A stretch of DNA of 64,000 bases, taken from positions 12,452,642 through 12,516,641 of the forward strand of contig OZ037770.1 in NCBI GenBank assembly GCA_964035545.1, given 5' to 3'. Each line of letters opens with the position of its first letter. Position 1 is the first letter of the stretch. Below the pieces are notes generated by a model. That model searched no databases, was not told the origin of the DNA, and saw only the letters and a list, made by a program, of their open reading frames with translations. The translations under genes and the position numbers were made by a program. Of the stretch, positions 1,717 to 29,734 are shown piece by piece. Origin of the DNA: Bugula neritina. Taxonomy: Eukaryota; Animalia; Bryozoa.

Positions 1717-4399
1717 CTAATAACCTTGAACTTCAATCTCATGAAGGCCTAAGCCTGTTACAGCATTAAACAGAACCTGGACAAAGCGGCCACTGATTGG
1801 TTGATCACATGTAATCAGAGTGTAGTATTGGTTGAGATAACCATCAACATATTTGCACAGAACTTCTCTGTTAGATCCAGTAAACTCTATATCTTCCTCT
1901 ACCATAGCCACTGTTACTTCTGTGTTCTTCGATCTCTGGCTATAGTCCAAAGCTGAAAAACACATTTTAAATTCTACGCTGCTATATGTCCAGTTCATAA
2001 ATTTCAGTTCTTGTATATATATATATATATATATATATATATATATATATATATATATATATATATATATATATACATATATATATACATATATATATAT
2101 ATATATATATATATATATATATATATATACACACAAATGTCTCCTTATTAGCACGTCGAAAACAAACAAAAACAATCTTATAAAAGTTATCAAAACTGTT
2201 GTAAACAATCACTTACATGATTAGAAAAAATTTGATAAAGTCTAGATGTCTACAGATGAATTAATTTAAAGCGGCAATAAAGCTGCATGAAAGCCTTAAG
2301 CTTTGGAATAAAAAACAAAGAAATCAAATTTATGGCAATTCTGCTACAATTATACTATTATAATTCAAAATTTCTAGCAAAAAATGTAAAGTATGTGATT
2401 ATATGTACCATTCCGACAGCCTAACTTACTCTCAAATCTGTTGAGAATGTTGATAGCCCAGACACAGTGTACATCTCTCAGGTCTACTCTCCACCATGGT
2501 CTAGTCTCATGATCACTGTGTGCCATTGATGACTGTGTGTCTGATGGTTCATATAACCCATCTACTAGGAACTCTGCTCCATAAGAGTAACTAACATGAT
2601 CAACATACACAGATGACATCTTTGCTGGTTTATCTAAAAATTCATTTTTCAGTTGTTAGAATGTACTCTAAAAATTGGCTTTAGAAAAACTGATAGATTT
2701 ATTTCAATTCTTTAATGGGTAAAGTATTTGTAATTAATCGAGTTTTGTTAAAAAACCAGTTCTTCAAATTGTTCCTATAATTAAGGTAAGAAGATATACT
2801 GTGAAATACAATTATTTTTTGTTACCCACAAGTGAACTGAAAGGAAAGCAAGTTTAGGTTATAGCTACAAATAATTATGCTCACTTCTAGCTAATAATTT
2901 ACTGAATCTTTCTCCAACATCTGCTCTGATGTAGAAATCAGAATCATCTCCCTGTCCTTCTGCATATAGATTGGGATTAACACATGTTTTAACAGAGCAC
3001 TTCTTGGTTAGCCAATCATATGTGAATCCATTGCATTCTTCTCTTCCCATGCAATTGGTTGCGCAGCGAAGAGTAGAACCGATTGCCTTGGAGTCATGTT
3101 GTGAAATGTTGGATAGAGATTCTGGTATGACATAACTCTTGTAAAGAGCAGTCTGGTAACCAAATACTGCCACCACCGCTGTAAGCTTTAGTAACAGCGC
3201 TGCAAAAATAATAACTAGAAATTAATGGCAATACCCATCATTATCAAGTGCTAATACTTTTAAAGCTAAATTTATTGTTTTACAAAATGTTTTTATGATT
3301 GACAAAAAAAATTAAATTACAAATTAAATGAAAATCTCATTTCTAATGATTGCATATATATATATATATATATATATATATATATATATATATATATATG
3401 TATATATATATATATATATATATATATATATATATATATATATATATATAATTTATATTTTTAGTTTATTTCAAAAAGTGACAATACAACATAAAACTAT
3501 ACATGCAGTTTGCCTCAGTGATTGCCTGTCACTCTTTTGTTATTTGTTATGAAAATAATAGAACATATATATAACAAAGTGCACTATTATATGTTATTCA
3601 ATATTTCTTTTGCAAAATAATTCTATTCTAAAGTCATGCATTCTTGAAAAATCAAAACAAATAAAAGAACCTGAGTTAATGCTGAATCAGTTAAACTAAT
3701 GAACAACAGAGGTGATGCAATCTACTGCAGCAACTGTTAACTCTCCTATAAGTTATTCCAAACCTAAAATCATACATAAACTTCCAAAATTAGTTGTTTT
3801 CAAAAATCAGCAAAAATTTATAACTTTATAGTTTGATGCTATGATTCAAATTTTAGAAATTTTTGATGAATTACAATAAGACTCTTAGACAGCTAGTTCA
3901 GTTAAAGGTAACCCTGCTGAGTCAAATATTTACGGCTTATAGCACCCTCCTCAACTAATAGCTCTACAGTATAGTGCTGCTGCGCCTTAGAGCCTTATTA
4001 CCAATATGTCTTCTGTTTCAAATATATGTATACTTTGCATTCACTCTATAATAAAACTCACGCAAGTTTATAGTTGCTATCCCTGTGAGAAACCCTTGAT
4101 AGAAAGGGTTTTTGTTAAATTGGGCTAAGGACTTGTTTAAATGAGACACAGGAGCAATTATGACTGAATGCTCTTCCTAACATCACCAATGGCCTTTGTC
4201 TGGGCTCGAACCCATTACATCATGTTTACTGGGCAAACACTCTAACCCCTAGACCACAGCAACATTCACTCTATAGACTAAATATAAAAAATCACATCAC
4301 GAAGAAAAATTGCAATTATATATTCATTGAAGTCGTTGTTTATACAAGTAGTTTATAAGATAACTTACCAAGCCTGCATATCAAAAGTTGACCCAGCAT
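1717..4399 (-). CDS. Secreted PAN/Apple + F-type lectin protein, cluster copy 1 (261 aa, intact)
   Basis: Exons 4399-4369, 3199-2885, 2633-2430, 1952-1717; all GT-AG, phase 1-1-1, 786 nt. Signal-like [24 protein letters not shown]; PAN core C-x3-C-x5-C-NGFTY-x6-C; FTL motifs LVDG, H-x26-[18 protein letters not shown]. Confidence 0.85.
4055..4260 (-). mobile_element. tRNA-derived SINE
   Basis: Minus strand has box A (TGGTCTAGGGG) and box B (GTTCGAGCCC), then a body homologous to 19912-20121. Confidence 0.65.
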
Positions 4400-5568
4400 T
4401 TCCTTAGGATTTTTAATCAAATAGGCTTAATATTTTCGCAAGCTATCTGAAAAAAACATATAGTAACAAATGATACAAATACTTTATTTCATCTGATCTA
4501 TGCTGTCTTGAAAATAAAATTTACAAATCCTGATTAGAAACTGGTAGCTATTTCACTTTTTGAATTAAAAAAATAAAACTAACTTACCTTCAACTTTAGA
4601 CCTTAGATATGAATGGATGAAACTTCTATATAGCTATATAGATTATCAAGATGAAGCATGAGATAAATATAGAATATTTAATTATACAGCACGAGTAGGC
4701 GAGTATAACGTTGCCAGGGTGTATTGAATTAAATGCCGGTTAGTTTTGCATGTACTATGAATTTATACATCGGGACGGTAGGCTTAAATTACAATAATTT
4801 TAAAAAATTCTACATTGTTCAAAGCCTGCTGATTTCCTCCTCAAAGTTGAAGTTTCCTCTTAGAGGAAATCCCCGTTAAATAAAACCCAATAAAATTATA
4901 AGTGTAGATTAAAATTTCCATTAAGGTATCAGTTATCCTTTTTTTTGGATCAATATTTCTATAATCTGTGTTTTACAGTACATTGAACTTTCCATACTCC
5001 AAATGTTTGCATAATTTTTTTTCAATATAAACCCTGGTAAAGAGCAAAGCTCACGTAAAGCTGCTAGATGTACATCTATAAATGCTTACTCAAAGATTAG
5101 CTTTTCTGTTATAGAATAACATTGTCTGCATAAAAGGAATATCTACACTATATCTAAAGTGTACATGAATCCAACACTATACGTTTATTTACTCTTGTCT
5201 GACGTTTGTTTATTCAAGTTTGCAGCTTGAAACCGCTCACTTATTTAATTTACTCTGAGCAAACAGGTGTTTGACTTTGGCCTTGATGCCGGCAAAGAGG
5301 TTTACTATATTTTGGAGGACAGTATATACTAAAATTATAACGCTGAAAATATTTCCTCTTGAACTGTGAAATGATAATTTTTTTTAATATACTAGAAACA
5401 TGGTTGAATAAATTGAGCATATATGTGGGGAAAATCAACAACTTTTATTGTGACATATAAAGAACAAAATGTTTTATTATATATAATGTACCCATCTTCA
5501 ATCATCATAATACACAAACAGAAATTAATGGACAAATATACATAAGTGTAGTGTTGAGTATATTCAGT

Positions 5569-5635
5569 GGTCTCTGTGGTGTTTAATAGTTAGAGCGAAA
5601 ACTGGCGGTCTAACGTTCGAATCCCGGTAGGGCAA
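5569..5635 (+). mobile_element. Possible tRNA-like SINE head (degenerate)
   Basis: Box A-like TGGTGTTTAATAG and box B GTTCGAATCC; no full cloverleaf. Confidence 0.3.
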
Positions 5636-28893: not shown

Positions 28894-29632
28894 TTTCTCA
28901 AAATGTTCAGCAGCCAAAGAATATTGAAGCTAGATATCTGAAGAGAGGACCGTTTAGTTAAACCTGATGTGTTACAGTTGAGAAACACTTCATTTGTTCA
29001 ATCATTTCTCAAGTGAGTTACAGCAGAAGTAATTACGGTAAAAGTATGGATTAAAGTTATATAGAGATAATGATTAATTTCTTGTTCTATATATTGGTTG
29101 TTTGAAACTATATTCATGCTGATTGCAGTGCTCTTTTTTAACAAAACCAAATGCACAACATTAAAGAAATGAAAACTCATCAAATACATTTTAGCAAATT
29201 AACTTTTACCAAGCAACACGCTTGTTTGATGATGTTTTTTATTCTCGTACAATGCACTGTGTTTATATAAATGTGTAGCACAATCAATTTAATGGCTTCT
29301 AACACAAAATTAGATTTCATCTCAAACCGATCAGGAATTATAAAAACCAAAAAAAAGTTCACCAAATGTATTATGGTAAGAAAGCTTTTCCAAAAAAGAC
29401 CTTACATATTTCTCAATCGCTAACTAATGAATATCTCTATTGTCTTATTTAAGAAATCTTGCAAAACAATAGAATGCTATAAAAATAGAAGATATGCATA
29501 CTGATTGATTAGATCAAACAGGCTTTATACTATGTTATAAGGTACACATGTACATGCAGATACTCAGATGAAATACAGGAGCTCGTAAATATATACGAGT
29601 GCATACATTATAAATTTATATACGTGTATATT

Positions 29633-29734
29633 CATTAAACAGAGTCTGAACAAAGCGGCCACTGATTGGTTGATCACATGTAATCTGAATGTGGTATTGG
29701 TTGAGATAACCATCAACATATTTACACAGAACTT
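29633..29734 (-). pseudogene. Relic internal fragment of lectin exon 4
   Basis: About 100 bp highly similar to the [13 protein letters not shown]...SGRFVQ segment; no flanking exon sequence. Confidence 0.8.

Follow-up and report, generated by a model that had tools for sequence, protein, structure and literature searches.

How can neighbouring genes keep one stretch of coding DNA almost letter for letter alike while the sequence on both sides of it, within the same exon, varies freely? This question is raised by a gene cluster in a 64,000-nucleotide (nt) stretch of the Bugula neritina assembly (C6:12452642-12516641, hereafter the window; the assembly, called this genome below, comprises 216 Mb with ~30% G+C, and C3, C6, C7 and C9 are its contigs). 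Positions 1717-29741 of the window hold five tandem genes of one family (c1 to c5) and one relic. As judged from splice sites and translation, the genes share a plan of four exons with phase-1 introns, and the predicted product is a small, secreted protein with a signal peptide, a PAN/apple domain and an F-type-lectin-like domain. Exon 1, the first coding exon, measures 31 nt; exon 2 (291-315 nt) completes the signal peptide and carries the PAN/apple domain, exon 3 (183-207 nt here, 183-210 nt between copies) encodes the first half of the lectin-like domain, and exon 4, the last, measures 236 nt. Genome-wide, at least 40 exon-4 matches were scored (76 candidates) on contigs C6, C7, C3 and C9. 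An earlier note on this DNA had proposed that recurrent short-tract gene conversion and diversifying selection together build a recognition repertoire of constant frameworks and variable loops. In our analysis, copying of DNA between paralogs, by gene conversion or unequal recombination, is the probable reason why a 159-nt core of exon 4 stays alike, and this copying appears to be slow or episodic.

The exon-4 core was aligned from 30 copies of this genome on C3, C6 and C7; the comparisons cover about half of the family and, within this genome, not C9, which carries copies of a sister subfamily (subfamily 2). Results showed that the core is almost invariant in the 30 copies, while the 32 nt 5' and the 45 nt 3' of it in the same exon vary freely. 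All five window copies have the core, as the earlier note had described, including the pseudogene c3. Over 9743-9900, 3 synonymous substitutions (GTG/GTT, ACG/ACA, GTC/GTT) are all that separates c2 from c3; their first coding exons differ at 13/31 nt, and the two genes can be aligned in exons only, not in introns. Variation and indels likewise occupy the places reported: the segment that follows SSV, the one from DG to the His, the exon 3/4 junction and the stretch preceding LxEVEV. The synonymous difference, given here as between-copy means over 25-26 copies with exons 2-4, was 0.5-0.65 in these four variable segments, 0.36 in the PAN exon, 0.29 in the RPWW block, 0.23 in the WLTKK block and 0.14 in the exon-4 core, where it reached a minimum of 0.012. 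The RPWW and WLTKK blocks had been called near-identical; their synonymous difference is only mildly lowered and does not reach the level of the core. The family members are old paralogs, with most introns unalignable between copies and loop codons synonymously saturated. Core distances showed no correlation with those of any of the remaining gene regions (Mantel r -0.11 to 0.19), whereas the other regions correlated with one another (0.37-0.44, p 0.002). The beta-sandwich framework is conserved as protein, and the 159-nt core is conserved also as DNA, within one subfamily.

A related lineage, distinct from the organism of this genome, is represented in two independent Joint Genome Institute (JGI) metagenome assemblies (samples agree 99.4-100%; L-numbers denote their contigs). 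The same metagenomes hold three copies, of one lineage, of subfamily 2, and the core synonymous difference between these and subfamily 1 was 0.52-0.53, vs 0.14-0.16 within subfamily 1. Seven fixed silent differences separate the subfamilies, at sites that are invariant, or in another state in no more than 3%, among 40 subfamily-1 cores. Because silent divergence from subfamily 2 is saturated and includes fixed differences, the silent sites of the core are not intrinsically constrained and are uniform only inside the subfamily. Group-specific fixed silent differences among old paralogs, seen here against the three subfamily-2 copies, are what concerted evolution leaves behind. RNA structure was also considered as a cause of the silent-site conservation and was rejected, as the core folds no better than shuffled sequences (z +1.17) and no Rfam match was found in window positions 1-32000.

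Broken copies retain the core. Private core changes amounted to 5/1116 in copies with disabling lesions vs 36/3021 in intact ones. The pseudogene c3 has 0/159 private differences in the core vs 3/66 in the exon-3 block; C6_10753m has 0/159 in the core vs 9/135 elsewhere, and C6_14172m, whose other conserved blocks have diverged by more than 20%, has 3/159 vs 44/195. Furthermore, a core variant of two adjacent bases without intermediates (CAA/AGA) differs in 3/5 ortholog pairs between the two lineages and takes 8 changes on the tree of non-core sequence; since both adjacent bases change with no intermediate state, these flips are not explicable by point mutation. Core variants as a whole are randomly placed on the non-core tree, a weak signal with 14/22 branches unresolved. 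At ordinary core sites, the five ortholog pairs showed 7 silent changes, where ~11.6 would be expected under neutrality and ~2.3 under strong constraint.

Two genes of the related lineage illustrate the scale at which exchange may act. The cleanest ortholog pair (L054:2641-4052 and C6_12423m) is collinear, with introns and flanks 83-92% identical and silent differences of 0.08 in the PAN exon and 0.07 in exon 3. All 4 core differences of this pair lie within 74 nt, 3/4 of them at recurrently variable sites, and the cluster looks like a short conversion patch. Along 2.7 kb of the L055 gene, introns included, the nearest relative in this genome switches in the order c4/c1/c4/any/c5/c1/c4; the switches fall at conserved blocks, and the second assembly (L056) has the exon-4 junction as well. 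The L054 gene, taken as a control, had one ortholog as its best match throughout. The subfamily contrast, the clean pseudogene cores, the two-base flips and this intron-containing patchwork bear out the earlier claim that selection at the protein level alone is insufficient to explain the core.

The word recurrent in that claim fared less well, and a number of observations weigh against the copying explanation itself. Homogenisation within each lineage is the classical hallmark of concerted evolution. In our data, the 10 related-lineage cores have the core consensus of this genome with no fixed difference, and the same sites (core positions 33, 91-92, 135, 141, 153 and 159) vary at intermediate frequency in both lineages. 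Core silent difference was 0.145 within this genome, 0.160 within the related lineage and 0.150 between them, so that paralogs within a lineage are not more alike than orthologs. The five ortholog pairs have 4, 4, 5, 8 and 7 core differences (median to all copies of this genome, 6-10), and in 4/5 the two orthologs have a rare core variant, or the site of one, in common. Since orthologs keep shared rare variants and a common consensus, little homogenisation has taken place since the lineages split. A proximity effect was nearly nil, with core divergence of 0.040 within 50 kb vs 0.049 between chromosomes, which speaks against proximity-dependent conversion. The pairwise homoplasy index (PHI) test on exons 2-4, jointly and singly, was not significant (p 0.37-0.99), although incompatibility is uniformly high, so that PHI can't separate saturation from heavy exchange. 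In a rough coalescent estimate, symmetric conversion among ~60 copies with a silent diversity of 0.1 would require ~24 events per copy since the split. So many events would erase the vertical signal; steady symmetric conversion therefore fails, and homogenisation must be episodic, or come from few donors, or be joined by selection for sequence identity. In addition, the L055 patchwork comes from short-read metagenome assembly, which can mis-join at identical blocks, and the subfamily contrast is drawn from three subfamily-2 copies of one lineage. Zero net divergence between the lineages fits constraint, and is equally expected if no homogenisation followed the split.

These points bear most directly on the alternative that nucleotide-level selection specific to the subfamily fixes the silent sites of the core, with little or no conversion, because the core serves as a homology anchor, as the target of a regulatory RNA or as an antisense reading frame. 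The common consensus and shared variable sites of two lineages without net divergence, an excess of singletons, the absence of a proximity effect, the non-significant PHI and the rough quantitative misfit of steady symmetric conversion all speak for it, as does an antisense frame that runs through the core without a stop in each of the five copies. However, chance often leaves a frame in that register open, and the copies do not count as independent cases; the 7 fixed silent differences and saturated silent divergence from the sister subfamily do not fit such selection, broken genes retain the core no worse than intact ones, the 7 ortholog silent changes reject strong constraint (~2.3 expected, p ~0.01), the two-base flips are impossible by point mutation, and neither RNA structure nor Rfam gave a signal. 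We consider this alternative unlikely, though it deserves more weight than the others. If, instead, the subfamily had radiated recently, the core would show its true age and the remainder of each gene would evolve fast by hypermutation or indel turnover. The genealogy of the core has a star-like shape, its private variants correspond to about 1-2 times the lineage split (rough estimate), and the introns of the closest window paralogs are ~70% identical, not far above the ortholog level. Against this, ortholog introns and flanks at 83-92% identity and PAN/exon-3 silent differences of 0.07-0.08 indicate ordinary rates, paralogs differ by 0.36 at silent PAN sites with most introns unalignable, and core distance is uncorrelated with that of other regions, which makes a recent radiation improbable.

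An artefact of assembly, through consensus collapse or polishing across paralogs, would be favoured by blocks longer than typical k-mers. It can be given hardly any credence, since each core has singletons of its own, the contigs are 16-32 Mb long, the same core occurs in 10 contexts from two independent metagenome assemblies of the related lineage, and some of the rare variants concerned appear in protein sequences too.

Copying between paralogs therefore stands as the explanation we prefer, and a mechanism of the following kind may be proposed. Paralogs would overwrite each other's core DNA, within one subfamily, while the four loop segments, lying outside the homogenised stretch, would diverge almost freely, indels included. 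The end points of exchange would tend to fall at conserved blocks, so that loops and flanking introns could move as cassettes. Homogenisation would be slow or episodic, possibly from few donors, and mostly older than the lineage split; since then, only short patches, of roughly 16 to <140 nt, would have been exchanged. In a bolder version, the core would itself be selected as a homology anchor, the two other framework blocks less so, and the copies, broken ones included, would form a cassette bank. Its logic would resemble pseudogene-templated conversion in chicken immunoglobulin genes and cassette copying in lamprey variable lymphocyte receptors (VLR). This version is very improbable on present evidence; if true, exchange of loops with introns in the germ line, or even in the soma, would amount to a combinatorial recognition repertoire in a colonial invertebrate.

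The second half of the earlier proposal, diversifying selection in the loops, found no support. The sliding-window comparison confirmed the synonymous depression in the core, but loop dN/dS above 1 was not found: windowed ratios of replacement to silent differences per site (pN/pS), computed without site models, ranged from 0.09 to 0.97 and were below 1 in every window. In close pairs, loop pN/pS was 0.13-0.92. One close pair showed 9 replacement vs 0 silent changes, which was not significant (rough binomial p ~0.1), and both of its copies are broken. Since synonymous divergence in the loops is saturated too, they appear old and weakly constrained, and they look like sequence that has escaped homogenisation. 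Synonymous identity alone shows neither ongoing conversion nor diversifying selection.

For domain identification, exons were searched singly rather than as a joined spliced protein. Against Pfam PAN_1 (gathering cut-off 21.4 bits), exon 2 of c2 scored 22.1 bits and that of c1 24.6, which identifies a PAN/apple domain. Exon 3 matched PF22633 (F5_F8_type_C_2) with 31.7 bits vs a cut-off of 27.8, and that of c2 matched striped-bass FBP32 (3cqo, E 4.6e-12), eel agglutinin (1k12, E 3e-5) and also Sm-hPAF, establishing homology to F-type lectins; exon 4 searched alone gave a weak FBP32 match (E 0.037). A full-length Watersipora homologue matched 3cqo with E 5.4e-18 and had weak matches to factor XI apple domains. 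In alignments read with the published eel agglutinin features (PMC5712786), the segment after SSV corresponds to complementarity-determining region (CDR) 1 (Glu26/His27), the segment from DG to the His to CDR2 (Phe45/Tyr46), and the exon 3/4 junction to residues 80-86, that is, the Arg79/Asp81 loop with the Arg86 equivalent. Intron 3 splits the lectin domain between the Arg79 and Arg86 equivalents. The earlier assignment of the variable positions to pocket loops thus holds for three segments; for the fourth, before LxEVEV, we infer a place near the pocket.

That the pocket binds fucose is doubtful from the sequence. The canonical motif is H-X24-R-X-D-X4-(R/K) with the vicinal pair Cys82-Cys83 (PMC5712786). 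The His and first Arg of the family align with His52 and Arg79, are usually both present and keep the spacing of eel agglutinin. In the family alignment, equivalents of Asp81 and of Cys82-Cys83 are absent after this Arg, so the RXDX4R part of the motif is missing, contrary to the fucose pocket assumed before; the next Arg/Lys lies 1-2 residues beyond the motif position, inside the variable loop. In the alignment (for example C6_12423m, C7_12547m and C6_12435m), some copies that are otherwise intact have Asn or Ser in place of the His52 equivalent, others have Lys as the Arg86 equivalent, and the first Arg is replaced in C6_14172m. With the His52 and Arg86 equivalents substituted in some copies, the basic triad varies within the family. 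Of the cation motif h-h-D-G-x, AVDG is present, with x mostly I/V/L rather than N/D/S (PMC5712786). A Cys pair, LC...TC, 16 apart, has the spacing of Cys108-Cys124; the Cys50 equivalent is absent and that of Cys146 occurs in few copies only. Exon-4-like stretches, several per protein and 42-47% identical, were also found in three proteins of 1300-1650 aa, one of them from Mytilus californianus; judged by this similarity, the C-terminal half of the lectin domain is reused in long multi-domain mollusc proteins.

The features of the cluster are listed in Table 1. Open frames were found in c1, c2 and c4. The coding status of c5 is doubtful: its exon 3 starts 2 nt short, and the gene is out of frame if splicing does not use a weak donor that lies 9 nt 3' of the usual one.

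Table 1. Genes of the cluster, the relic, and the conserved and variable segments (window positions)
Feature	Position	Strand	Description	Evidence
c1	1717-3199	-	exons 2-4 at 2885-3199, 2430-2633, 1717-1952; open frame; exon 1 not located	splice sites, translation; Pfam PAN_1 and F5_F8_type_C_2
c2	7134-9954	+	complete model: exon 1 7134-7164, exon 2 7402-7716 (PAN), exon 3 7946-8128, exon 4 9719-9954	
c3	12647-14479	+	pseudogene; exon 1 12647-12677; TGG>TAG at 13685-13687 (exon 3); normal stop codon gone at 14477-14479	
c4	22446-24275	-	complete model: exon 1 24245-24275, exon 2 23749-24039, exon 3 23319-23501, exon 4 22446-22681	
c5	26529-28893	-	exon 1 28863-28893, exon 2 28221-28532, exon 3 27755-27953, exon 4 26529-26764	
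Exon-4 relic	29622-29741	-	~100 nt of core left, ~5 changes; flanks replaced	nhmmer, model positions 81-200
Homogenised core, 159 nt (EVTVA...ILFNA)	c1 1762-1920; c2 9751-9909; c3 14276-14434; c4 22491-22649; c5 26574-26732	c1 -; c2 +; c3 +; c4 -; c5 -		alignments
Variable half of exon 3, c2	7946-8055	+	aligns with CDR1 and CDR2 and includes the His52 equivalent; copies differ by indels	
RPWW block (RPWWRVDL...ILNR), c2	8056-8121	+	moderately conserved; the Arg79 equivalent marks its end	
Variable 5' part of exon 4, c2	9719-9750	+	forms the exon 3/4 junction loop together with the last exon-3 codons	
Variable 3' part of exon 4, c2	9910-9954	+	segment before LxEVEV, then stop codon	
WLTKK block (17 residues) in PAN exon, c2	7587-7637	+	moderately conserved	

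Several repeats accompany the genes. Intron 3 of c1 (2014-2129) and the DNA just 3' of c2 (9978-10187) contain long (TA)n tracts, and (TA)n abuts exon 4 in several further family copies. Intron 3 of c2 contains a 16-nt tandem array of 23 copies (8417-8789), and an (ACTGC)n array stands just 3' of c4 (22158-22388). On one metagenome contig, a seven-transmembrane (7TM) gene (Pfam 7tm_1, L031:3973-4974) follows the lectin gene, and a similar neighbour is found beside several lectin copies of this genome (C6:11.02-11.24 Mb), so units of a lectin gene and a G-protein-coupled receptor (GPCR) gene seem, by their arrangement, to have been duplicated jointly. The best match of the L031 GPCR (86%) is not the collinear copy (77%). 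On L060, a stretch that is 86.5% identical to window 19730-20995 has a family exon 4 immediately upstream of it, while the corresponding place in the window (18801-19640) has (TTATA)n-like and (TAGTG)n arrays and no exon 4; a gene copy was therefore gained or lost between the lineages. A repeat of ~270-400 nt at L054:1-438 has dozens of matches at 91-98% on all chromosomes, often in tandem, and probably represents satellite DNA or a young mobile element.

Work on zebrafish NLR genes reportedly found particular exons alike across many copies on several chromosomes, with the recognition parts diverging. That system, an example of exon-limited gene conversion in a large innate-immune family, concerns another protein family and phylum, and here the homogenised 159 nt lie inside an exon with variable coding sequence on both sides. 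The sperm bindin of Crassostrea gigas is encoded by a few single-copy genes with 1-5 F-lectin repeats; alleles are polymorphic, transcripts are alternatively spliced, and positive selection has been demonstrated at 8 sites (PMC5712786). Both systems diversify F-type lectin domains around the sugar pocket, with some variants losing the His-Arg-Arg triad, and bindin recombination involves a variable mid-domain intron (PMC5712786), as intron 3 splits the domain here. Unlike bindin, the bryozoan family has at least 40 separate genes, each with a single lectin domain and a PAN domain; it also has one DNA-identical block, and its pN/pS stays below 1. Eel fucolectins (Anguilla agglutinin and A. japonica eFL-1 to 7) are isolectins that also vary mainly in CDR1 and CDR2; however, they keep the triad and CDR4 strictly (PMC5712786), whereas here the Arg79-Arg86 loop is among the most variable parts and a PAN domain stands in front. 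The closest full-length proteins are the "fucolectin-like" proteins of Watersipora subatra (RefSeq XP_067939544, XP_067945208 and XP_067936986). These, also from a cheilostome, share the PAN plus F-lectin-like plan and a length of 211-218 aa and are 38-49% identical in the exon-4 part, but, compared at the protein level, these representatives are without the conserved core of this family.

Bryozoans, to which the cheilostome studied here belongs, are colonial animals with symbionts and fusion/rejection behaviour, and we know of no recognition-receptor repertoire described in them. The cluster and its relatives are a large, clean and previously undescribed bryozoan case of a known phenomenon, a lectin-like multigene family with a DNA-homogenised framework block and variable pocket loops. 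The failure of the simple model of steady conversion calls either for homogenisation that was episodic or drew on few donors, or for selection that favours sequence identity, and the family is a good natural system for the interplay of conversion, selection and copy number. With at least 40 predicted secreted lectin-like copies, whose pocket-aligned segments vary freely around a scaffold block identical as DNA, it is also a concrete candidate for a recognition repertoire, a role that we infer.

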